Assembly: GCA_037379345.1 (NCBI GenBank)
Contig: CM074511.1
Location: 20,708,001 to 20,772,000, forward strand
From: Perna viridis
Lineage: Eukaryota
Reading direction: 5' to 3'
DNA: 64,000 bases
A program made the position numbers and the translations under genes. Shown here piece by piece: positions 45,515-64,000 of this stretch. The notes under the pieces are model-generated. The model saw only the letters and a program-made list of their open reading frames with translations. It was not told the origin of the DNA and searched no databases. Position 1 is the first letter of the stretch; the number at the start of each line of letters is the position of its first letter.

Positions 45515-48500
45515 ATGCTTAGGCTCTTCTTTACCAGTGCAGTGTTTTGGTCTGTTCTTGGTACATGTATAGTGGAAGGACAAAAATCAGAATGCCTTAT
45601 TCAACTCCATGACAGCTCTTTGGTGTATGGCAGAGCAGGCCATAAGATGTTGTGTTACCTTGAGAGTATAGACAGTAGCAAGTATGTTGTTGTGTTGGTA
45701 AGTTACTCTTGAAAATGAGGCCAAAATTTTTAAAAAGTTATGTTTTTCCTATTACCTTACAGAGATCTCCTTAGATCCATATAGCATCTGATCACATTGC
45801 CCTGATGCAATATTTTTTACTGGGATGCTATCAGAAAAGAACTTCCCATTGGGTCCAATACAAATGTGATGCAATATTGACATTTGAGGGTTACCTGGAT
45901 GCTGTAAATCATATGGAGAACACTGCCCTACCTTTTTTCAGCTACACTTATATAGTGTACCCTGAATATTTTTGGTATTACAATGTATTTCAATAAGCAC
46001 TGTTAAAGTCAGTAGTTTCCCCATTAGTCTCAATATAATGAAAAATAGTAATATAAAAAAAATCATTATACAGTTTACCTTCGTTTTCTGAACCTCCCTT
46101 TTATACAGATAAATACATGTAGGAAACTTGCATATCATCGTATTTATTCTAATACAATAACTTACACATTTCATTGACGAAATATCCATAGATATTGGTT
46201 CAGTATAATTGTGTATTATATAAGTACAAAAATATATATGTACATGTACATGTAGAACCATACATTTTGCACAGGTGCTGCTTAGTTTCTAAGTTATTCA
46301 AATTTAGTTTATTTGTCATTAGTTGAACTGTAGTTGAAAATGTCTCACTTTCCTGTCACACAGTTGTAGAGCTATTTTTTCAAAAGTTGCTATCAATATT
46401 TTAATGTGCTTTATGTTGCACCAACATAAGTGTATGCATGTACATGTAAATGTGTTTAGCGTTTCTACAGTTCTGTTCAGTAATTCAAGATTATCCATTT
46501 TTAATACCATTCTTCATTTTTATCCCCAAACAATACACAGGCACAAACCATTTGATTTCTCTAGAGGTGGAGGTTTTCTTGCACCAAAAATAATTTGGGC
46601 AGCATCTGGAGAGAAAATGAAATCTGGGCCACATTTTGCCTATTGGGAAATAATGAATTTTCCAAATACAATACATCCAGAGAGTATAGATTCTCAAACT
46701 CCAATTTTGGTGTCACTTTTCGGAGTGACTCCAGCAAATTCCCAAAAATGCCATTAAAATCCTTGAGTGATCTTGGTGTACTTCCTCCAAAAGGCAATAA
46801 AATACTCCAAGCTGGGAGTTTTTATTGCCCTGATTATCAGTTGCAGTACCACCTACACCCCGTCTTACCTGTGAGGTGAACATGATTACAATACACAAGG
46901 TAATAAAATACTTGGAGTGGCTCTGAAATACTTCCAAAAAGACAATAAAATACTCCAAGATGAGAGAAATCACTTGGAGGATTTTAGAAGTGGACTCTGT
47001 AAAACTCAGTGATCCACTGGACACCGAAATAAAAGTAAGAGAATCCTCCCTCTCTGGGTGTACTGTACTTTGTTTTGTATAATAAAGAAGGAAGAAATCG
47101 CTCCCATGAATAAGGCCAAAATAAATTTCTCAATCACATGAAAATCCCACACTCCTTTCAAGGATATCAAAATGTCTGTGCCTTATGCATGTAAGTGGCA
47201 TGTTTGTATAAGTTTGCTTAATCTTCTGAGAATTTAAAAATAAGCTGGTTATTTTAAGTCAATGTGTAAATAGTTGTTACCTCCCTTTGTTTACTTATTG
47301 TACATGTCGGATCTAACATGCATGTACATTGTACATGATATATTTACATAGTAGACAACTGGCATTGTGTCAATTATTCACTTGTCTCCAAAATCATCTG
47401 GCAAAAAAAATATTACAAACACATATTGTATATATACAATGTACACTTATACATGTACAGATTACAAAATTTCATTACAAAATGTACTATTGATAATTCA
47501 TCTACAATTTTCTATAAAAAAAAAAAACCAATGCACCTGTGCTGGTACCTAATTTTTGGAAGATCTTTTTTCAGAGGGACGGTGGAAAGGACTGGCTGCT
47601 TTATGATCCAGACAAGCAGATGATTACTGTTACTCCAGAGAAAAACAATATTGGTCTGTCCAATATATCTATCAGTGTAGAGCCAAATTATTGTAGTGAT
47701 GTTATGACCAAGTCATGGGAAGTAACCGTGATTTTCATTATTGAACTACCTTCGCTGTTATTGTCAAGTGCCACAGGTAAAAGGATCTGTCAACTGCTAT
47801 AATACATCTTATATTGTAGAATTGATAAAACATTGTAATATTTTGAATTGGGCATTATGCTAGGAAAATTTTTTTTTTTTTATAAATCCATCAAAGGAAT
47901 TAACATTTTACTATTGAATTGCTTGGTTTAGTTCAGTTGCATCAGCATGTAGGAACTGCATGGTCATGTGTTAGTATTTGTTGATAAAAGTTGAGATCCA
48001 TGTACATTTTCGTTTGAAATCGGCTCCAGACTTAACTTTACTTTAAGAACTAAAGTTAAATACCTGAAGCACAACTGTATCTCATTAGTTGTTTATAATG
48101 TGCAGAATTTGGATGGTATCACTGATCAAAATTACAGATTTTATTAAAGTTGTTGGGTAAAATAAACCCTAAAATGACATACCTTGGCTTTTCATCTGTG
48201 TTATGTTTTTTGTGTTTTTTACTGGTATATTGAAATTTCTTCATGGATCTTTTTTTTAAATTTTTTAACTGAGTTATGTAATATACATGTAACCAACTCT
48301 GCAACAGTTAAGGATTCATGAATTGACAAGTGTTTTATGAACAAGAGTAAAATGTCTCAAAGTTGGTTATGCAAGCTTAACTTGGTCAAAATTAAAAACA
48401 ATATGTATAATTTAGTTTCTGATACAAAGATTCCAGTCCAAATTAATATTTGACCCTTTATTGAACATTAGTCAGTTTGAGATCCTTTGAACGGCAGACT

Positions 48501-51500
48501 ATGGACAAACCAACATTAATGATGTCACAGTTCCAAAGTACAGATGCAGCAATTAACTGATAATAAGAAATCCCTTAGCTTCCTATTTCATTGGCTTATA
48601 CTATATATATTTTCTATATTGAGAATTCAGATAGTACATGATATAAAAAAAGACTGAAGAAGAAACTGTTTCCGTTAATAAATTCATGACTTCAGTTAGT
48701 CTTTAGATTACTAGTTTGCAAAAAAAACTACATGGTTATACAAGTATTGTAAAACCATCTTCACTAGCCAAGAGTTACAGCCCTGTCACCCTGTATGCTA
48801 CTTGCATAGTTCAATTGTGTAATGTTATGTGTTTTATCTTTATTTATTTTCTGTTTGTGTTTTTGTTTTACATTTTAATTTGTTTTTATTTTATTTTGTT
48901 TGTTTATGTAGTGCACTTTATACTAAGATATTTACACACTTTAGTTGAAATACTGTGATTTGGATTTATACCAATATTGTCCCATTGTTTCACAAGAATG
49001 GCACTTTGAAACAAAAAAGTCACTGTAGAAAATTTATACTAGAATTTACAGGAAAGAGAGGTTATATCTTCATTGGTAAAATTTTGCCTCGGTCAGAATA
49101 AATACTAACAAACACGAATGAGCAGATCCAGAGAGTTTGAAAAGGGGGAGGCTCACGCTTTTATTTTCTCATTAAAAAAAATCTTCAAACGAAAAAAGGG
49201 ATGGTCCAACCCCTGCAGACACTGAGACATGAAGATATATGCAGCACTGATTTTACATAGCATGCCATGTTTTTCAGAGCTTTAGTAATGAACCTTGATG
49301 CATCATGAGTTTTCTGATGTAGTGAAATGAGGCATGTGAATTGAATACTAAAATTTCTAAAGTTATTTAAGCAGATACGGTAAGTTCAAATGTTTTTGTC
49401 ATTGCTTGTATACTACTGTATGAATAAATATATGTAGAGAAGTTTTTTGTCCCCTGCAACAAGGCGATGACCATTAGGCATTTGTCCTTCCATCCATCTG
49501 CAAGGTTACATAGGTGTACATTGTAACTTCTCTGAAACCACTTGACAGATTCATTTGATATTTTGTTTTAAAGTGTAGGTATGCATACTACACCACCATT
49601 TTGCTTTGATAAAATTTTGTAGGAGTTATGGGGCTTGCACTATACACCTTGTGGAAACAACTCCACGAAAACTACTTTACAAATCTTTTGATATTTATTA
49701 TGGTGTATGTTATGAAGTGTAGATTTGCATACCACCTGCTATTTTCAATCATGCATGTACTATACTGCCATTTTGATTTGGCAAATTTTATTGGAGTTAT
49801 GGGACAAAGATGTTGTAGACACAAATCCTCAGAAACTTGTGCTGAAATGTTTAAACCTAAATTGGCCAAAACATAAATAATTTATCAATTTCTTGTAAAT
49901 TTGAAGATTTTAATTATTTCCTCTGTAACAACAAGTGTCTTGTCTAGCTGTATTTCATTAACTTAATCCGCCATGGCTGGGGACATATGGCTACAAGTAG
50001 CTTCATATGTATCTTGTTATAGTACTCATACATGTACATGATATGATGTAACATTTTGTTTATAGTAATACTGTAGTTATAAACGTTTCAATTTTTTCAC
50101 GGTTGCTAATTTGTTATTTGATCTGTCTGTAATTCCTTCCATTCGTCTGAATTGCTTTGCAATTGTCTCAGCTCCCAATGGATGCATTGATTCCATATTC
50201 GATGTGTGGTTATATATAGATGGGGCGTACATTATACACAAATTGGGTGCTGTCCCATATTAGCTTCCTGTACAAGTGGGGGTGTTTATTTGTACCTAGC
50301 GCAACAAAGCATGCAACTTCATTTAAATGTAGATGTAGTTTGAGATGTTGTCAGTGTTGGCTTGAAAAAAATTTAAGGTAACCAACTATCTGTAAAATAC
50401 AACAACAAAAATCAGATATTTATGACAAAGTTATGGACTTTTGCTACAATCTCTAATTTTGCAATTGATTCTTTGAAAAAAAAACAGACTTCTAAGTTGA
50501 GTTCTAACATATACGTACTTGTATACTTTAAAGGTTAAATAAAAATTCACTGGTGATATTATTCTTCTGACATTGTGTAGATAAAATACATTATGTAAAT
50601 TATAAATTTTTCTAGATTACACTTTTCTTTTTCATCCATTCCAGATTCTTGCTTGAGTCCACCAGCTGTTCACAGACCTATTAACCACATACTGACCAAA
50701 GTAGGTCGGGTTTTCAAACATAATCTTGACCCTTTGACCTTTGTTGACAAAGAAGAAGGAAAATCTACTGAACTTCAAATCAGTTTGAAACCCTTGTTTA
50801 CATTTGATTTTTCTGACAGTTTTTGGCTTAAACTGGATGAAACAAGTTTGACATTATATGGACTTCCATTAAAGAAAGACAATGTTTATGTTGTGAGTTT
50901 GGTTGCCATGGATTCCTGTCAACAAACTGATGTGGATTCAATCAGGTTAGAGTTATCTGAAAATGTAGAAGAATACAATCATGAATTTATTGTTTATCTA
51001 GGGGATTACAGTCCTGCTGGGTTTGATATGTATAGATTTGTAAATGGCCTAAGTCAGTGGCTGGAATTTTCTGAACCAAGTCGAATTTATATTACTAGTG
51101 TTAACACAGATAGCTTGACAGTGTCATGGGTTGACACCTCAGTATCTTATGAGCATTGTGAAAGAAATCAGATTTTAGATCTTTACTACCAAATGGCTGA
51201 TGACAACGGAACTATTTTGGAGTCTTTCAGCTGTTTCTTTTCTCCATTTTTTAATCTTTCTGCAGTTTACATAGATTTTAAAGGCTCGTGTAACATTACA
51301 GATATTTTTCTGGTGTCTGATCATGAAAAAGTTACTGAATCTAACACTGATGATATGAATTTGTTGTATATTTTAATTCCTGTTGCAGCACTGACATTCA
51401 TTATACTGGTCATCATTGTTATAATGCTAGTAAGGAAATGTGTCAAACGGAATAAATATGTGATGAACTCTGAAAAACCTATCTATCTTGCAGACAGGCA

Positions 51501-51705
51501 ACCAGTTATATTCCAAAATGAATATAATGAGGATGAAACTAATCTGAAGCCACAGATACCTGTGGTTATAGACAATTTTGATGATCCTAACACCACCATT
51601 GCAAAGACATCTGGTAGAGGTGTAACTAGTCCTCCTTCATATGTCACTCCACCTCAACGTGATCCACCTCAATACAGGCTACCCCCTCCATATACAATAC
51701 CTTAA
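45515..51705 (+). CDS. Dystroglycan-like type I membrane protein (compact, 481 aa)
   Basis: Exons 45515..45697, 47575..47776, 50645..51705 join in frame (phases 0 and 1). Signal peptide; cadherin-like domain 1 (KDWLLYDPDKQMITVTP); cadherin-like domain 2 (PPAVHRPINHI..KVGRVF...TFVDKEEG...WLKLDETSLTLYGLP...LVAMDS); SEA-like region with the Cys pair (EHCERNQI / FKGSC); TM; PVIFQNEY; and the dystroglycan-type end QYRLPPPYTIP. Confidence 0.88.
46669..47065. mobile_element. TA-flanked MITE (Tc1/mariner-like ends) in the dystroglycan-like intron
   Basis: TA-CAATACATCCAGAGAGTATAGATTCTC ... GAGAATCCTCCCTCTCTGGGTGTACTG-TA. Its right part recurs at 56857-56980. Confidence 0.75.
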
Positions 51706-54700
51706 TTATCTATCCATAAGGGAGCGTCCTTTAAAGTATCATGTTATGAATAAATATTGGCCAGTGTGAATTACTTGTTGACAGCAAATAATATTTTCAG
51801 TCATTTTTTAAAACTTTTCAGTCAAATCCCATCAAATACATTGCGACATATGATTATGTTTTTTTCATGTTTTGAAAACGCCTGAAAAACATATTGCAAA
51901 ATTACAGTGGACAAGGTATTGTTTCAATTATAATCATTAGCACTACATGTATGTGCTAACAGTTTGAGGAGGTAATTCTACATTTATACTTTTATCATTC
52001 TGTAAGTGATTTATATAGAATGTTTATCTATAGAGTAGTGAAAAATGTATTATAGAAATATTACATTGATATAGTGTCAAAACAGAGCATGGGAGAACTG
52101 TTTTTAATACTACTTATATTTTATGATAGATTTGTGAAATGTAATTTTTATTTATTTATACATAATGTTGTATTTAAATGTAATGTTAAAATTGTTTAGA
52201 AATACATTGTGTGTTATTAAAGCCCCTGTATTATAAAAGTTTGGGGCATGTAGGAGTCAATTTGTCAGCCTGTTCTTATATTTACAGAACGTCATCATGT
52301 TTTCCCCAAAATGTAATATGGAATTCAATGGAACATTATTTGAAGGTTGGGCATTATACACGAATTTACATGTAGTTGTTTTGAACTTCGATAATTATTG
52401 GTAGATGCTTCAAAAGGGAGATAATTCAAGTTAGGATTTCACGTATGCACAACAAGGTGCATCACTCAGTTAAATTTCTAATTTTTTAAGACTTTTACAA
52501 GGATAAGGTAACATTTCAGAATTAAGAACACTGGATCTAGATTTTCTTGTATGCACCTATACATCAAATGATAATAACATTTGTTAAGCTGAAAATCTTC
52601 AGAACATCTGAGTGCATTGACTAAGTGACGTCCAAAAGTATTTAATCTTGTTAATGATGTACGATAAGTTCGTCTAGTTTATGTGATGGAACTTTGTTAC
52701 CAGTATGTTTATTTTATTATTATCCTTGGGTTGTTGTCTACCATAGACATTTGGTTTCTGAAGATAATCTGTACCATAAGGTTCGATGAATACCACTGTG
52801 GGAAAGTCAAGTTTGTTTTTGGGTAAAGGCTTTTGCTGTTAAGGAATAAGGGGCAATAGATGATGTGGGAAGAAGCTTTTCTGGTTGCCAGTCAATTACA
52901 TGAGTATAGATGCAAGTGTTGAATTTCCTTGACATTTGTTCAGGGTTGACCTTTGCAGTTGTATCAAGACTGAAGTTTGTGAAGAATTGTTATTTATGCC
53001 CAACCCTTATATGCTGATGTAATGTTAATTTACAAGATCTGTTTGTAATTAAAATGTGTTTCTTGTATTTTTTTTATTTTTTTAAGACTCTCTCTTATTT
53101 TACTATGTGCATTCAGTGTAGCCACAGTTAAGATTTTCTTCATACAATCTGCCCAATCTGCCTGAAGCTTTACAAAAATATGCAAAATATAAGTCTTATT
53201 AAGGTAGTAAATATTAGACAATGTAAAGTCAATGGATCAGTTTCATTACAGTTTACATAAAATAAGTTTATTTTCTAAACTGTAATACCACATTGACATG
53301 ATGGATCCTTCACTTGCTTTCCGTTTGTTTGGTATCTTTTTTAGCTTTGTTTATCTCATCTATATTGTGGTTATGTACATTATAGGGTGGTATACGTTAG
53401 TTTATGAGACAATCTGCAGATCGTTGGGCAATTGCAGTCACACTAGAAAATTCTCTTTCTCCTCGCAAAAAGCTGTGATTGCAATTAGTGAATATTTGTC
53501 ATTATGGTCAATTTTTTACAGCAATATAATTGGAATGAGACCTATTTCTGTAATTGTTCCATTTAGTCATTGCATGTATGATCTAACAACTCTCCAGTCT
53601 ACTTTCTGTCTAAATGACCTTTTCAGAATTATCAGGTTTTTGCCTTTGAATGATGCTTTCAAAATCATGAAAGATGAAATATGATTGGCTGATCGGAAAG
53701 GTCACCAGAACATAAAGTATAATGGAGTGTTGTAGGAACAATTGGTGGATGTAATTAAACACCCCCAGCAAATGAAGTTCGGGGGGGGGTATATTGGTTT
53801 CACTCTATCTGTCTAAATTATATTCTTAGCAGCTTGCAGCATTGTTATGGAATTTTGTTGGATATAATATAATCATATGGAATATACATATTGACAGGGT
53901 TTTATGTTTGGACATGATGACTGTTGAACTGAGGCATTTTTCAGCAAAGTTTAGTCTGAGGCATTGTCCACAACTCCCCCTCAACGACTTGCAGAATTAT
54001 TATGAAACTTTGTGCGTGTTACATGTACATTACCATATTTAGGTGTGCATATCTTCAGGAATTTGTTTGGTCAAAATTTGTAGAAATGATGACCATTTGA
54101 ACTTGAGTATTTTTCAGATTTGGACTTATCCTTTTTTTTAGCAGAACTTGGTCTGGTGCATTCTTCATATCAAAAACATAGTACTGATTGCTGTGTGGAG
54201 TAGGTTGTTTTAGAAATGACAGCAAGCTGTGTTTCAAAAGTGCTTAGTCTATCCACCATAAAGATTATATCCAATATGAATCGTATGTCCACATTGGTCC
54301 TCAAATGTATAGGGTTCAACAGGCTGCAGGGGTATTAGTCCCATTAGGGGCAATGTATAGTTTTAATCAGATTGTTTTACAGGGAATGTTTTCATTCTAT
54401 TTTACTGTTTATTTATTTAAATCATTGTCAATATATCAATTAGGCTAAGTAAGATGTATGCATTCCGTTATGTTACATTCCTTCCGGGTATTTTCATCAT
54501 TTTTTCCAACCTCCTTTTAGTTTCTCCCGAAAATACACACAATAAACAGACCTAGGATAACTGCTACTGCTATTTTTATGCATAGATCCCTGAAAAAGAA
54601 ATTGGGTTAAAAATAGTAAAGAAATTAGGCTCTCCTTAGAAAAAAAGAAACAGCTAGGTTTTATATGAATACAAAATGTCGATAATAATTCGACTGAAAT

Positions 54701-56856
54701 CAGTTTATAATTGACAAGCAATTCAATTTACTAACTCAATCCTGTCGCGAAAGTTTGATAAACTATTTTCATATCTCAACATACGGCATGAATTCAAACT
54801 GTATAATCATTCGAAATTGCGTCTTTATCATAAAACTATATCAGAGTAAGAAATTAATTGAGATCACTTGTACAAAACATGAGGATCGATTTTCAATATA
54901 AACGCATTCATGATAAACATCCAGCCCCATGGTGTATTAAAATATGAACATTTATTCAAAGCATACTAATATTTTATATATTGAAAACAAAACGGATTTT
55001 GCACAAGTAACTCATACTAAAGAAATCCTCCCCAGTTCATTATTATAATCAGTACGACATGCATAGTTTGTATATGCCAAAAGGATGTAAAAAGGGAATT
55101 TTGTCGAATTAATTATAAAAGGAAAATTCTACAAAAAATATTACAAGCGATAACCTAACCATCGAAATAAATTTACCTGGTTTTAGCCGTCTGTGATATA
55201 TACTTCCGATGTTGGTTCGAACCTTTCTTTGGACTAGAATAGTAAATAATGACAGCAGTTGGTCACAAAGGGTAATTATAACACAATTACCGAAATTATA
55301 AACTCTAGACAAAAGCTAGAAGAAAAGGGCGAAAGGAAAGCCTTATAACAGGTGACAATATCAGGACAAAAACAGGAAAATTGGAAACAGGTGCTGTGGT
55401 CCTGACTTGGTACAGGTATTTCTGGTAGTCAAGAAATGATGGATTAATCAGGTTTAGCAGTGTGCTTAACAACTCACTTCCGTTATTATTTTTTCCGACT
55501 TGTGTTGTATACAGAAGGCGTGAAGAAATAAATGATTGAAAGTGAATTGAATGATTACCACGGTTGGCATAATGATGAAAGATCAGCTACCAATGTCAGA
55601 TGAAACAGGAATAGCAAACAGAACACCTTAATCAATGAAGCATCCAGTTCTTTTATAAGAGCTGGGTAAATTAACCTGGGCGCCACCAGATAGGCAGACG
55701 CGGAGACCCCAAAATTATGTAAAAGAATTTTATAAGTAGCAGTCTATAAATATCAGACCAGTGAAGATTCATGTATCATGACAAAAAACAACAATATTGA
55801 CTTTATTTACTTATTTACAGATCACACAGTCATTTTGAGTTTATCATTCGGTTGTTTTATATACGAGTTATATAATTAACCAAAATAAATAGAGTGTACA
55901 TGAAGTTAGCGTTTATAAGAGTTATCGTACTTGATTTGGTTGATTTTTGTTGGATTGTCTTTTACTTTTAGTATTACACTCATCTGTAGAACGAAAAATG
56001 CATAGTTTTGGTTTTATCCATAACTATGAATCAATTTTGGTAGAGTTATATCCACAATTATGATTATTTGTATTTGGTGAGACACATTATCGGTCCAACT
56101 GACTACACAATCCTGATCGGAGTTGTAGGGAGTTCATTTATAGATGATAGACAAGAAAATGTACCGGTAATAAAACCACCAACAACGTTTAGACTTAACG
56201 TCAGCATTTTTTTATTCCGTATTAATTATTTACATTTGTCGTTTTCATTCAAAATAACTAGCTTTATTTTGTAAGGTGATTGACATGTTGATTCGATTAA
56301 TGTTAAGTTTAGCGTTCTGATTCCTCTATCAATGGCGATCGGAATGTTCACTTATCCTTAGTATCATCAAATATTTGAAATCATATACATTTTCATAACT
56401 TATTAAGTGAAAAGAAATGTTTTTAAAAAAACTATCTTTGAAGTTTATAACCTTTATATTAAGGCATCTTATCTTACCTCTGCAGTCTCTTGCGGAGCTC
56501 GTACAATGGTCTTCTTGTCAGTAAAGCACGACCACGTCTGTAAAGAACGAATTATTGGGTAGAGCTACATTCATTAGTTCCTGTTTCGTTCTGCCGATTG
56601 TTTGATTATAAATTTATGTCGTGATAGTTTCGTTTTTAAAAAAGCATTTATTGTTGTAGATGTCTCATTATTTCTTCTTGGCTTTAAAGAGAAATTTAAC
56701 TATTTTAATGCTGGCATTTTTGTTATTTTTTCCTATATTTTTGTTTAATCTGCATCCGTTCAAAATTTTCAGTGTTTATATATATATCGATATGCATCTC
56801 CCATTTTGGAGAAATTTGACTAATTTACAGTTTAATCACATGAAAAAAACTTAGCA

Positions 56857-56980
56857 ATAAAATACTTCCAGAAGGCAGAAATCACTTGGAGGATTTTAGG
56901 AGTTGATTCTGCAAAACTCTGTGATCCACTGGACACCGAAATGAAAGTAAGAGAGTCCTCATCTCTCTGGATGTACTGTA
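56857..56980 (+). mobile_element. Fragment (right end) of the 46669-47065 MITE family
   Basis: AGAAATCACTTGGAGGATTTTAG...GTGATCCACTGGACACCGAAAT.AAAGTAAGAGA...CTCTCTGG.TGTACTGTA is shared with 46945-47067. Confidence 0.8.
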
Positions 56981-57303
56981 TGCATACCCTTTTATTGACA
57001 AATTGGATTAATATTTCATACTTATATTACCTGTTAAACTAAGCGTCATATTGCAGCAGTGTATGCCAGTTATATGTTTAGTGTTCAGATATTTACAATG
57101 AATGTGCTGATAAATGTATGGCAGTGACGAAGATGCAAACATGTTACCAGTCTTGTTTGTAGTGATAGTGACGCATATGTGCACTGCAAATTGTGGTGCC
57201 TTCATTGCTTAAATATTTGGAAGCCATTACATGAACAAAATCAATGTACATGCAATTATTAGAATAAGGTTTCTTCTTCCTTTATTGTGTAATTGTCGGC
57301 AAC

Positions 57304-58251
57304 TTACTTATCCTCTGGAAGGGAATATCTATAACTTTCCTCGTCCTCATCGTCTGTGAATTCGCACCTGTTTCTGTAAATCTCAGCGCTGTTATCTTTA
57401 TTATTCACTTTCTTTGATTTATCTGTTGTGGTTTTTGAATTTCTACCTACTTTCTTCACACTTTCTTTTTGAACTACATCATATCTTTCTTCTTTTAAAC
57501 ACCTGCCAGTTTTCATCGGTTCAACTTTTCTTAACTTTAGTCTTTTGCTCAATGCATTTACTATGACTATGTGTTCATGCAAGTCGGTTTCATAAAGAAC
57601 TACCTCAGATGTACTACTATAGAACACAAGCACCTTTAGATACAGAGTAGAAGGGTCCAGGTCTAGAGCTAGAGAATAAATCAAAACCTGTATAAGAGCA
57701 TGGACTAAATAATCTTCCTCATATGTTTCCCGTTTCATTGTAGAATATTTTATATCACAAACGACAAATGGTGACGAACTTACAAACACGTCTGCTTCTA
57801 GCTTCTTAGTCAGAAATGGGAAGATGTGGTAATTCTTAATGTGATGCCCAAATGAGTAACGTATTGACTTGCTTTTTCTTCCATAGATTTTTCGCACATT
57901 TCGTTGAAATATATCCCATGCTGTCTTGCCGGCATCATTCATGTAATTGCTGTACAATTTCCTTTCCTTTGGTTTGATTTTTGGATAGAGATCCTTAAAT
58001 TTTAGCCAAGGGTCTTCTTTTTGACATTGATTACTTGCTGCTTTCTGTACGGAGTACTCGAATAAATCGCCATGAATATATTTCTGAATCGGAGACTCAC
58101 TTACTGGAATCACGTCATTGGAAATTTCGCCTGAAATCGATTTTTTGGTTGTTATTTTGAATCGTTTGTACTTGTCCAAATTTCCATTGTTCTCTTCCTT
58201 CAGTTGTTTAATGAACTGATGCACTGAAAGTAAGTCGCTAGTACTGCCCAT
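57304..58251 (-). CDS. PD-(D/E)XK superfamily, RecB-type nuclease-like protein (315-aa ORF; probably spliced to small exons 56537..56478 and 55983..55980)
   Basis: Long open frame in AT-rich DNA with ordered motifs HGDLFE65, LEAD154VFV, VVCD166IK168YS and IQ188VLIY192, then a hydrophobic strand LKVLVFY and a Lys-rich/acidic tail. The stop overlaps a consensus donor (GATAA|GTAAGT at 57308/57307). Confidence 0.75.
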   Translation of the reverse strand: MGSTSDLLSVHQFIKQLKEENNGNLDKYKRFKITTKKSISGEISNDVIPVSESPIQKYIHGDLFEYSVQKAASNQCQKEDPWLKFKDLYPKIKPKERKLYSNYMNDAGKTAWDIFQRNVRKIYGRKSKSIRYSFGHHIKNYHIFPFLTKKLEADVFVSSSPFVVCDIKYSTMKRETYEEDYLVHALIQVLIYSLALDLDPSTLYLKVLVFYSSTSEVVLYETDLHEHIVIVNALSKRLKLRKVEPMKTGRCLKEERYDVVQKESVKKVGRNSKTTTDKSKKVNNKDNSAEIYRNRCEFTDDEDEESYRYSLPEDK

Positions 58252-61200
58252 GGTACTAAGAGTGGTGTAAAAGGTATCCGGAAATAATTGCTTTCGTTAT
58301 TTCTATGGGCGAGGTCAAATATGAAGCAAACTTTTATTTGGATTAAGTTGTTTACTTTTGTAATAATGTACATATTGTGGAGTACTATAAAGTCAACAAA
58401 TTTGAAAGGTTTTAGTAAAATCAATAACAATAAACGGATAAGTATCTAAATTTTATACGTATGTGACGTAGACCTGTCCTCTTTTGAGGATATGACGTAC
58501 CAATCATCTTATCTATGTAGTGGGTAAACAAAAATGACGAATACACATCTGCATTAAAAACAAATCTGATTTTTCTTTTTTGGGAATACGAATCGTGTAG
58601 GTTGTCAAACGAAATAGCTTCCTTCAATCAAAATCATTTTTCCAAATAAAAATTATTTCAAGTAATAAGGAATGAGTGAAAAGTAACGAAATGTTTTGTA
58701 TTCTTCATATAATTAATGCATAACGATAAAGAAATGAATATGAGTAAATGTAACATAAAACTGCTTATAAATCTTGTTCTTTGTGAGAATTAAATCTAGT
58801 TATATTTTGGTAATGTTCACTCATGAATCCATCTTTTGAATTAAAATGTACTTGATGATAGACACTAATTCCATGCATCAATCATGGGATCACTATAATC
58901 TTTTTTTTCTCAATACGACGATAAGCACAATACAAAACTTTTTTGGTTTTCAGAAAAGTGTATTTGGTTGTTTCATATATCTTTTAATTCCATCAAAATA
59001 CATGATTTCAACATAGTAGTTTAGTTTTAAAAGTAAAATATGAAGTTGTCTGAGGTTTTGACTAAATTACGTGAAGGATACTTATCTTTATGTAGATACT
59101 GACGATTATCATGAATTCTAGAACAGACATTAACGTTGACATTAGAATGTCAAACATTTGTCCATATTTCTTAAATAACATTTGATGAAAACGATTTTTC
59201 AAGCAAAAAAAAAAAAAAAAAAAAAAGGAAAGAAAAAGACCCTGAAGTTAACGAAACTAAATAACACTTCCATTATCGAATAAGGACATATCATGCCAAT
59301 GTTTGACGTCTGTTTAAACTTTTTACCAAAACAAATGTCGACTATTCAATTAAGTTGATTTGTATAATCGGCCAAAAGATATATCATATTGAAACATAGG
59401 TGGGAGTGTACAGAAAGAAACATAAGGGGTCTATGATAAAAAATATTTGCAATACAAATTTTAGCTAAGAAAAAAAAACCGGCATTCACAACAGAAACGT
59501 GTAGCTATATTGCAATTATCATCTTATCAAGATACGATATACTGAATACAGCTGTGTTGTGTCTCGTGTGCATGTAGATTGCTTCCTCATTTTAGTCATG
59601 CCCATAACAATCTTTATTTACTTGGTTTACTTGTGGTTTTCGATATTTTTTTTTATTAATTGAAACATGAGTACCATATAAGTAGCTTTTTACCATTCAA
59701 AAAATAATGAATAATGATTTTTTTCTTCCACGAGTTTGTGCTATCTTTTAAGGCAATATGTAATAATCAACTCGTAATTTAATACTTTGCAGTATGCCAA
59801 TGGTAGATTTAAGCTGCTAAAAACTGCAAGTGTAAAAGTGTGATACTAGTTAAAAATAACAAATTCACCTGACTTGTATATCCTTATTACAATGGTTTTT
59901 GTTTGAAAAAGCACAAGAAAGGAAAAATAAAAACAGGATGTTTTTAAAGTATTGTTCAAGTGCTACATGACGTTGGGAAAGGAAAACACGACAGTTTTAT
60001 AGTTAGCCGATATGTTTCATATCAATAAAAAATCCATCAATTTTTTTATATTTTTTATCATTATTTTACTTTTTCGCAATTACTTAATAAAATGAAGCAG
60101 TAATAACAAAATAGCTCATGTATTTTGTGCTCTTTTGGTTACCTTAATTAATCTACTGGTTTTAAAATCAATAAACCAACTACTTACTGCTATTTACATA
60201 AGCTTCGATCAGAGCAAGTTTTATCAAAATCCATCAAAGAAATCTTCTTCATAGGCCTTCATTACCAACTACTTACTGACCTCAAGTTTCATCGATTCCA
60301 TATGAGTATTTTTCATTACAATCCCCCACTGGAAACTAAGTTTATGCAGAAGAAACGTATTCTGGAAGATTGCTCAAGAAGCCAAATTTTGTAGCCTCAT
60401 CACTCTTCCGGAAAAAGTCAAAAGAAACATATTCTTAAAGGGTAAAAAAGTTAGGAAATAATTGGAAAACACAAGTGTCTAATATTGCATTGCATACTTA
60501 AACTGTACGAAGTCATCCTGGTATGAAAAATGTGTTGAGTGTTGAAAGAGTACTATTTATGAAAAAAATAAAGATAATTTTATTAATTTGACTGCATAAC
60601 GTACATAGTTCAACTACATCAGACTGTCTTTAATATGCAAGTTGATTTTCGTTTAACAAGTATAACTACATTGTTTATTTTCCATTTTTATTAGACATTC
60701 ATAAAATTCGTTAACTGGTTAAATTTCAGACATTTTATTTTATTTCTGACATTAAAGTTACTTTTAGTATTCTTTTATTATTTTATATAGGACAGAAAAC
60801 AATTTTTTTTATTCATTTATTTATTGTAATTTTGAATATAACAACATTTATGAATGTATGAGGACCACATGCTACTTGAATTGTAAGAAATCATTTACAA
60901 TGATGCTTCACTTATACTATACGACAGTTCATGTGTAATTTATCAGCACAAATTTATCTAAAAAAATCAAATTTATACACAGAAAAAGAAAGTGATGCCA
61001 TTTCAATCAACGTTTTAATGACAATAAAGTTGTAAACATACTTATCACTCTGCAAACTTCCGGTAAATATTTACTAAGGAAATACAACATTTTGACTTTG
61101 ACAGATATTTACGTTTTTTCTCAAGATGATACAATTAAGTTATTGTTGCTTACTTATATTAGATTTTTGACAGATAATTACAGGTTCATGCTAACATTCT

Positions 61201-62122
61201 TTTTAAACAAGATTCACACTGTGTTGAAATTGTCCGTGACTCAAAACAGCATATGTATTTTATCATATGTACACGGTACCGAACTTAAAATCTCATAGGT
61301 TTTTGATAAGGCAAGCATGATTTATGAATAGTTCAATTGTTTTTATCTCAGAGGCATGCCTTAGGTTGCTGATGCATTGTTAAATAGCTATATCTTTCCA
61401 TTTGGTCTGATATCAACTTGTCAAGACTGTGACAAAAATGTATTACTCCTAGACATTTGTATTTGAGTTTTGTTTGTAAATGCACGAAAGACTTTAAATC
61501 ATCAGCTTTTAAAATGAAAATTTCAATTCATTACCAGTCCCAGACAAACCACTAATAGTTGACAATTTCCGTTTTCGACACTTTTAGAAGTATTTTATGC
61601 ATGTTAAACTTGAAAAACAATTATCAAAAGATACAGTCGCATCACTTACGTGACATTTTCAAATACTTTCGTCAATACTTATGCAATGATGGTGCTTTTG
61701 TTATTAGAGTTTAACTAACGAAGACAAAAAATGATCAATTAAAGAAATTTTAACAACTCGCACTATACATACATGCAAAACCAGAGACAGGGATTATATG
61801 ATGTCCGAGTGGTGTTAATTTCATGTTCAGTTTTTTAAAAAAATAGTTGAGCATGGAAAGCGCAATACTCAGTCAAAAGGATATAGTTATTTGGTATTAG
61901 CATTGATTAGCTCTTAGGTTCTTCACCTAGAAACTCGCACACTATATTTAAAAGCAGCTTTTTGGCACAACATGGGTTGTGTATGACTTTTGATGTACCG
62001 GAGTTCTCAACCCTGCCCGGGAAGAAGTAATGTTTGTTTTGTGTCTGTTTTTCATGTCTGGTCTATGTCCTTAGAATACATTCTTTTGATTTCCGCTAGA
62101 ACATTGGTTCCCTTGATTACTC

Positions 62123-63235
62123 CCATACCTACACCTTAATCGACAACTTCAACAATATCTTTTCCCGTACCTACCCCTATAATGACATTTCACCTATGCT
62201 TATTCCCATACCTTCACGTATACCTTTTCCCATACCCACATTTATACTGACTTCTGCACCTATTCTTTTTTCCATGGCTACACTTATACTGACACCTTTA
62301 TCTACATTTTACCACACCTACAGCTTTACTGTCACCCTCACTTATGACCTAAACCTTCAGTAGTGTTCACCTAAATCTTTTCCCATACATACACCTAAAC
62401 TGACACCATTACCAACATCTTTTATCAAACCTACACTTATACTGACTCCCTCACTTATACCTTTTCCCATACCAACACCTATACTTACACCTTTATGAGT
62501 GTTCACCTATACCTTTTCCTATACCCACACCTTTACCGACAACTTCACCAATAACCTTTTTCCACACATATACCTATACCGATACTTTCATCAATATATT
62601 TTAAATACCTTCACCTATACCGACACCTTTACCAATAATTTTTTTCCATACCTACTTCTATACCGACACCTTCACCAATATTTATTCCCATGTATACATG
62701 TACACCTATACTGACACCTTCACCAATATTTATTCCCATGTATACATGTACACCTATACTGACACCTTCACTCCTACTTTTCCCAATGCTACACCTATAC
62801 CTACACCTTCTCCAATACCTATTCTTATACCTACACCTACACTGACACCTTAACCAATATCTTGTGTGTACCTATTTTTTTCCTATACCTACACCTATAC
62901 TGACACTTACGCCAATTGTTTTCCGATACCTTCACCATTACCTGTTCCGATACCTTCACCACTACCTATTCCGATTACTACACCTATACCGAAACCTTCA
63001 CCAGTACCTATTCCCATACCTACACCTATACTGACACCTTCACTAATACATATGCCCGCACCTACAACTACATAAACACATTCACCAATACTTATCCTAA
63101 TGCCTATACCTATATCGACACCTCCCCCAATATATTTTATCATATCTTCACACATACTGACACCCTCACATATACCTATTCCCATATCTACACCTATCCC
63201 GAATCTTCACAAGTACCAGTTCCCATATATAATTC
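62123..63235. repeat. Degenerate C/A/T-rich minisatellite (ACACCTATACTGACACCTTCACCAATA-like unit)
   Basis: Many degenerate copies with strong strand asymmetry, including a directly duplicated ~46-bp unit at ~62666-62770. It generates the low-complexity PIP/TYTY/GIG ORFs. Confidence 0.85.
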
Positions 63236-63932
63236 AAAAATGTAAAAATGTGTGCTGAATTTAAGACATTTCTTCTTTGCATTAAATATTTACCTTTTTT
63301 TTGTTTTGATTTTATTGTTGTCGTTGTAGTCGTTTTTGTTGTTATTATTATTGATTTTTGTTTGTTTGGTGTTCTTTGTTTTATTTTATTTTTGTTTTTT
63401 TAATTTAATTTTGTTTTGTTTTTTTTTTATTTTAGGTGTGTTAGGGTTTGAACCATTTCTTTACTGACACTTTAACTACAACATCATACATATAATTGTT
63501 TCAGTCCATCCTTTTAAGTAATATATTGCACTTTCTGATCTCTGTTTTTTTTTTTCAAATCTTATCGAAGTCGTTGAAGGAATTTCCCTATTGATGACGC
63601 CACGAAAAGTTTATTTAATTTTTTGGAATTGAATAGTAAACTAACTGTCAACTCAGTAGGAACTTTCAGACAAAATTAGATTTTTCCCTTTATAATTGAA
63701 AACCAAGCAGTGTTGTCAGATTTATGATCTATCACGCAATTTAAAAAATCAAAACGATATTAAAGTAATACCTGAATGCTGTTTTTCAAAATGAAATAAG
63801 TTTTTAAAAGACTGGATTTGGGGGATTTCATGATTTAATATTATTTCATATACTTTAAACGAAATAAAGTATAAAATAGTGTGCAATAGCATACATTTTT
63901 ATATAACGGTCATTGTTTCTTTTCTTAGACGC

Positions 63933-64000
63933 ATGGCAACTCATCTAAAACTACTGAATGGAATTCCACGAAACTTAATACTTATTGTACTCTTGCTGCC
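63933..64000 (+). CDS. Probable first coding exon (signal peptide) of the next gene, 3'-partial
   Basis: Strong acceptor TTGTTTCTTTTCTTAG (ends 63928), then ATG at 63933: MATHLKLLNGIPRNLILIVLLL..., open to the window edge. Confidence 0.5.
   Translation, partial: MATHLKLLNGIPRNLILIVLLL

Follow-up and report, generated by a model that had tools for sequence, protein, structure and literature searches.

A stretch of 64,000 nucleotides from Perna viridis (GCA_037379345.1, contig CM074511.1, positions 20,708,001 to 20,772,000; hereafter, the window) carries on its minus strand, from ~58.5 kb to 54.35 kb, a gene that had been picked out from the sequence in a preliminary description as an orphan nuclease of the RecB type. 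We find it probable that this is an expressed, spliced host gene encoding a tail-anchored RecB-type nuclease, which would face the cytosol and which, on present data, is confined to pteriomorph bivalves. Three lines of evidence are set out below: spliced contigs, conservation and predicted structure of the catalytic domain, and a predicted transmembrane (TM) helix in the last exon and in related proteins.

Splicing Extends the Reading Frame

The open reading frame (ORF) listing of the window contains a 315-residue frame at 57304-58251 on the minus strand, surrounded by AT-rich animal DNA (GC ~0.32) and beginning with an ATG at 58251-58249 in the context ACCATGG. Four public runs, from as many studies and one of them from a second organism, supplied contigs that were placed on positions 54500-60400. 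Their joints read CT..AC on the plus strand, i.e., GT..AG on the gene strand, and joints 56537/57308 and 56987(8)/57307(8) fix the end of exon 1. The stop codon of the frame falls inside the GTAAGT donor, and spliced mRNA adds downstream exons. We conclude that the ORF represents the first exon of a host gene that is expressed and spliced, and not the complete stand-alone gene for which it had been taken. Of the span originally given to the gene, 55980-58255, the ORF itself stands, but there is no exon near 55980, and the RNA-supported exons below 57304 lie elsewhere. As a practical warning, a "complete" ORF of 315 residues is here an artefact of a stop inside a splice donor.

Contigs of runs X5 and X10 contain an optional in-frame exon that those of X1 and X6 lack. 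Exons were translated singly, with the frame set by the joints, and all were open in the frame so dictated; codon arithmetic gives a product of ~376 residues, or ~417 residues with the optional exon. In one run (organism B) there is an acceptor in the 5' untranslated region (UTR), at 58302. The sequence joined at this acceptor, or at the loose ends of two contigs, had no match within the window. The window copy is the only genomic copy of the gene, so the spliced contigs must be RNA and the gene must be expressed. The coordinates of all features are collected in the table.

Table. Features of the nuclease gene (window coordinates; AF2, AlphaFold; pLDDT, predicted local distance difference test)
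Feature	Position	Strand	Basis or detail
5' UTR, contig-covered	58252..58522	-	X6 records 19-20, X10 loose end
Coding exon 1	57308..58251	-	Residues 1-313 and two bases of codon 314; ORF and spliced contigs
Predicted PD-(D/E)XK nuclease domain, residues ~8-244	57520..58230	-	AF2 pLDDT, fold matches, conservation
E65 codon	58059-58057	-	
D154 codon	57792-57790	-	
D166 codon	57756-57754	-	
K168 codon	57750-57748	-	
Q188 codon	57690-57688	-	
Y192 codon	57678-57676	-	
Splice donor	57304..57307	-	GT 57307-57306 in GTAAGT; TAA 57306-57304 is intronic
Optional in-frame exon, 123 nt, 41 codons	56866..56988	-	Joints; open frame
Coding exon, 60 nt, basic linker segment	56478..56537	-	Joints in 4/4 runs; translation
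Coding exon, 57 nt, basic linker segment	55177..55233	-	Joints in 4/4 runs; translation
Last coding exon, predicted TM helix then G-R-N	54517..54589	-	Joint; translation; TAA 54519-54517
3' UTR	54349..54516	-	AATAAA at 54417; contig X1 record 1 goes at least 151 nt beyond 54500

The First Exon Encodes a Predicted RecB-Type Nuclease Domain

The catalytic series seen in the initial reading of the sequence was found at exactly the residues stated (H60, G61, E65, D154, D166-x-K168, and Q188-x3-Y192), and the LSVHQF element near the N terminus occupies residues 8-13. Across an alignment of 16 family members with identities of 23%-61%, D154 never varies, position 166 holds either D or E, and K168, Q188, and Y192 are each conserved in at least 90% of sequences; Q188 and Y192 are lost only in a clade formed by one paralog of this genome (paralog 3) and P0014. 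These five positions make up the predicted metal-binding and catalytic set. Judged by this conservation, the series E65-D154-D166xK168-Q188x3Y192 is not a chance pattern. The protein has four cysteines (C76, C165, C251, and C296), one more than had been counted; they form neither an iron-sulfur (Fe-S) pattern nor a CxxC, and in the alignment none is kept family-wide.

With the family alignment as input, AF2 modeled residues 10-240 of the window protein at pLDDT >90 and left a disordered tail from residue 245 on. The model shows the canonical alpha-beta-beta-beta-alpha-beta core of restriction-endonuclease-like folds, with E65 on helix 54-71, D154 on strand 150-157, D166 and K168 on strand 162-170, and Q188 and Y192 on helix 182-195. 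Foldseek searches with this model returned the same class of nucleases with weak scores (E = 1e-5 in BFVD, 5e-4 in PDB). The model of a distant member of the family, P0017 (29% identical), is confident (pLDDT >90) over residues 1-250 and has a confident C-terminal helix at 334-356; its structure matches (RecE, 9.5; MGME1, 9.3; AdnA, 9.1) form the same list as those of the window model. Hidden Markov models (HMMs) of Cas4 match the catalytic core of two relatives, P0019 and P0021, at E = 2e-4 to 5e-4, with TIGR00372 at 0.0018, and the PDDEXK_1 match of one relative is weak (E = 0.12). A PHROGs search of the window protein gave noise only, and an ESM Atlas search with the relative P0003 gave scores of 0.87, below the usable level. 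Conservation and modeled structure together establish a predicted PD-(D/E)XK fold of the RecB/Cas4/lambda-exonuclease type, in agreement with the branch first proposed and with the structure search that had been suggested to check it. From the intact series we infer that the protein is probably an active nuclease.

The Spliced Product Is Predicted to End in a Tail Anchor

The Lys-rich tail of the 315-residue frame had been read as a possible nuclear-localization or DNA-binding extension; the spliced product ends instead in a predicted TM tail anchor. The last exon encodes a helix of ~17-20 residues whose best 17-residue segment has a mean Kyte-Doolittle value of 2.95, followed by a short, nearly uncharged tail (G-R-N in the window protein, 2-5 residues overall). 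In the NCBI model of P0003 from Mytilus galloprovincialis the TM helix is followed by KSID, and the same anchor is found in P0073 of Pinctada imbricata and in P0017, P0021, and P0076. The whole of P0017, anchor included, is a single contiguous ORF. By its predicted features, then, the protein has what defines a tail-anchored protein: one TM helix at the extreme C terminus with little sequence after it, and an N terminus that lacks a signal peptide.

In five genes of clade A of the family tree (the window gene and four relatives), the apparent stop sits in a donor-like GTAAGT, GTGAG, or GTACGT. Database entries that end there are thus truncated, and most entries of the family look truncated at this same donor, directly so for four. 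The C-terminal tail anchor is therefore, as far as sequence can tell, a family trait.

Domain and anchor are separated by a disordered, charged linker of ~100 residues. Within this variable linker lies an acidic EF(T/S)D(D/E) motif (window 57352-57369, residues ~295-300), which is kept from Mytilus to Pinctada (P0003, P0017, P0021, P0073, and P0076). The motif would fit a CK2-type site and loosely resembles an FFAT motif.

Paralogs, Relatives, and Neighboring Sequences

A profile search of all 1.84 billion representative proteins gave 14 matches, all belonging to the same family, and the relatives with a species name all come from pteriomorph bivalves (M. galloprovincialis, M. coruscus, and P. 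imbricata). As far as current data go, the family appears confined to pteriomorph bivalves (Mytilidae and Pinctada). The gene is not the orphan that it had seemed, since there are two paralogs in the genome besides the relatives in Mytilus and Pinctada. The 723 Mb genome holds three diverged copies in all (100%, 36%, and 23% identity), in place of the many dispersed ones for which a copy-number check had been proposed. In the family tree there are four well-supported clades, and each of the three local paralogs pairs with a Mytilus-type ortholog; clade A comprises several diverged copies in Mytilus-type genomes (P0005-P0013, 45%-56% identical to the window protein) and one here.

The two other paralogs lie ~30 kb apart on contig C5 (L002:1399-2169 and L003:1468-2199). 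Their stops have no donor-like context, and they appear to encode soluble proteins devoid of an anchor. In the clade of paralog 3 (L003:1468-2199, P0014, and P0074), E65 is replaced by R or K, Q188 by K or R, and Y192 by Q or H, and paralog 3 of this genome also has R for K168. This clade, still conserved between species, is likely to represent a pseudo-nuclease. Directly after the TAG of the 243-residue paralog 3, a hydrophobic stretch of ~23 residues continues in frame to a second stop (L003:1390-1470). It may be the remnant of a tail anchor that a nonsense mutation has removed from the protein; alternatively, it may be a candidate for read-through.

The ratio of nonsynonymous to synonymous substitution rates (dN/dS), which had been proposed as a check, was obtained from two close Mytilus-type pairs only (0.32-0.35 for the nuclease domain), since comparisons of the window gene with its relatives are saturated at synonymous sites. 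Distant pairs give a dN of 0.19-0.31 in the domain and of 0.64-1.2 in the tail. Hence the nuclease domain appears constrained yet fast-evolving.

The nuclease gene converges on a DAG1-like (dystroglycan) gene, which occupies window positions 45515-51705 of the plus strand (Pfam DAG1, 8e-11). The synteny check suggested for this neighbor turned out positive, with the same convergent DAG1-like gene in M. galloprovincialis (L004). No meaningful inverted repeats were found in the flanks of the nuclease gene and no transposase or viral ORFs near it, in line with the earlier impression that neither terminal inverted repeats nor a transposase enclose it. At the far end of the window (62000-64000), GC skew is strongly negative (-0.455), and the two strands carry overlapping ORFs whose translations are repetitive and rich in T/F/Y or in G/I/V, as would be expected of a block of tandem or low-complexity repeats.

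A Proposed Function and Its Alternatives

Since it has a terminal helix and lacks a signal peptide, the protein would enter a membrane post-translationally, in the manner of tail-anchored proteins. The choice between the endoplasmic reticulum (ER) and mitochondria follows general rules for tail anchors; the very hydrophobic helix and the short, nearly uncharged tail make the ER more likely than the mitochondrial outer membrane. The catalytic domain would then lie on the cytosolic side, flexibly tethered by ~100 residues, a layout that would follow the spatial logic of the mammalian exonuclease TREX1 on an unrelated fold. Its most likely role would be that of a Mg2+/Mn2+-dependent exo- or endonuclease acting on free DNA ends, possibly on RNA, near the membrane, and retention of the first intron could yield a soluble form of 315 residues. 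A role in defense or in DNA sensing would be plausible. We think it doubtful, though worth stating, that the protein is an independently evolved TREX1-like enzyme of the ER or outer mitochondrial membrane that destroys cytosolic or viral DNA or tunes its sensing; alternative splicing between an anchored and a soluble 315-residue form and the EF(T/S)D motif (through docking or phosphorylation) would regulate it, and soluble and catalytically dead paralogs could modulate it. If it does act on cytosolic DNA, these bivalves would possess a convergent counterpart of TREX1, in a setting of greatly expanded innate immune gene families and epizootics caused by DNA viruses.

Several observations weigh against the proposal of an expressed, tail-anchored nuclease. 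The window protein had no match in Pfam at E ≤ 10, and searches of PDB sequences, by phmmer and with the family profile, gave only chance matches to mS25 and Arc. An hhalign comparison with the EXO5 of the same genome (E = 0.15, probability 0.4%) is not evidence, and its register, which sets DIK...IQVLIY over ELK...IQVVLY, is discounted accordingly. The protein is thus silent in sequence searches, and the evidence for a nuclease comes from conservation and structure. That the stored contigs are RNA is a guess, supported only by the spliced joints and the lack of a second genomic copy; contig X1 record 5 reads unspliced through the exon-1 donor, and could represent either pre-mRNA or an isoform for a soluble protein of 315 residues. 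The full-length protein is known from exon-by-exon translation, and its activity, substrate, membrane, and topology are predictions.

The account originally favored for this gene was one of horizontal transfer from a large DNA virus, a phage, or a bacterium followed by domestication, the product being a soluble nuclease that stands on its own and whose Lys-rich end could serve in nuclear localization or DNA binding. The fold class is commonest in phages and bacteria, the best BFVD match is slightly better than the best PDB match (1e-5 against 5e-4), the weak HMM matches are to prokaryotic Cas4 models, and the taxonomic spread of the family is narrow. The catalytic domain moreover lies in one exon, P0017 is one contiguous ORF, and the contig retaining the intron could yield the soluble 315-residue form. 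No viral or bacterial protein was detectably related, however, in the profile search of the 1.84 billion representatives, which found no relative outside bivalves. The viral matches in BFVD are generic RecB-, Cas4-, or RecE-like phage proteins with TM-scores of at most 0.46 in the top rows, and in structure no group among the eukaryotic, bacterial, and phage nucleases comes out ahead, viral ones being no closer than human MGME1 or bacterial AdnA. Positive evidence for a viral or bacterial acquisition is hence lacking, and horizontal transfer is neither supported nor excluded; the account as a whole strikes us as improbable.

Somewhat unlikely, too, is descent from an old RecB-type nuclease of animals, for instance MGME1, by which a fast-evolving offshoot restricted to this lineage would have lost its mitochondrial presequence and gained a C-terminal anchor, perhaps at the mitochondrial outer membrane. 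MGME1 does appear among the structure matches, but its score is tied with those of bacterial AdnA and RecE, and the family profile misses the MGME1 chains of the PDB even at E ≤ 10. The acidic N terminus packs into the domain and does not resemble a presequence, and under the general rules for tail anchors the helix and tail point to the ER rather than to mitochondria. That the gene is cargo of a transposon or of an endogenized virus is very improbable. Mobile elements often carry PD-(D/E)XK nucleases, and Mytilus has several diverged copies; against this stand a copy number of only three in 723 Mb (identities of 100%, 36%, and 23%), the lack of notable flanking inverted repeats and of transposase or viral ORFs nearby, the DAG1-like neighbor in the same convergent orientation in M. 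galloprovincialis, and the splicing of the transcripts. Transposon cargo was rejected on the strength of the few diverged copies and the absence of inverted repeats.

Comparison with Known Nucleases

The core fold and the order and placement of the motifs are common to the window protein and the RecB/Cas4/lambda-exonuclease branch (Pfam clan PDDEXK_1), which includes MGME1, AdnA/AddA/RecB, RecE, Dna2, EXO5, and Cas4. Cas4, AddB, Dna2, and EXO5 differ from it in having a four-cysteine Fe-S cluster, made up of one N-terminal Cys and a C-terminal CxxC...C, and Dna2 is in addition fused to a helicase; with neither a helicase fusion nor an Fe-S cluster, the gene is not DNA2, as had been recognized. 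It is not EXO5 either, again as first held. A whole-genome PDDEXK_1 scan (with no query specific for MGME1) found only EXO5; the exon of this true ortholog lies on contig C9 (L005, 13044239-13047820; Pfam Exo5, 6e-35). This ortholog has the D...ExK (ELK)...QxxxY arrangement of RecB-type enzymes, along with a C-terminal CxxC...C cluster and a Pfam Exo5 match, both of which are absent from the window protein.

MGME1 has an N-terminal mitochondrial presequence, whereas the window family has a predicted C-terminal tail anchor. In the model, the N terminus of the window protein (D6, E19, and E20) includes a packed helix at residues 10-20 with pLDDT ~92, and such an acidic, folded N terminus argues against a mitochondrial presequence. 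Human MGME1 (PDB 5zyt and 5zyu) is 13% identical, with a structure score tied with those of bacterial AdnA and RecE. When the family profile was run against all PDB sequences, the MGME1 chains included, no MGME1 match appeared at E ≤ 10, so that by sequence the protein does not match MGME1, in keeping with the original assessment.

The family has no Pfam model and no name, all its database entries being "hypothetical protein," and a full-text literature search gave no description of it; the matches concerned the collagen CAS4_EPHMU and herpesvirus exonucleases. To our knowledge, there is no other case of a C-terminal membrane anchor on a RecB-type nuclease. TREX1 is a 3'-5' DNA exonuclease of the mammalian ER with the DEDDh fold. 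As predicted for the window protein, it consists of an N-terminal nuclease of ~240 residues, which would be exposed to the cytosol, a disordered C-terminal extension, and one terminal TM helix. TREX1 is a tail-anchored protein (PMC11904002). The difference in fold, DEDDh versus PD-(D/E)XK, makes the likeness one of analogy and not of homology. We therefore regard the family as a lineage-restricted variant of a well-known kind of nuclease with an unusual anchor, and not as a new kind of system.

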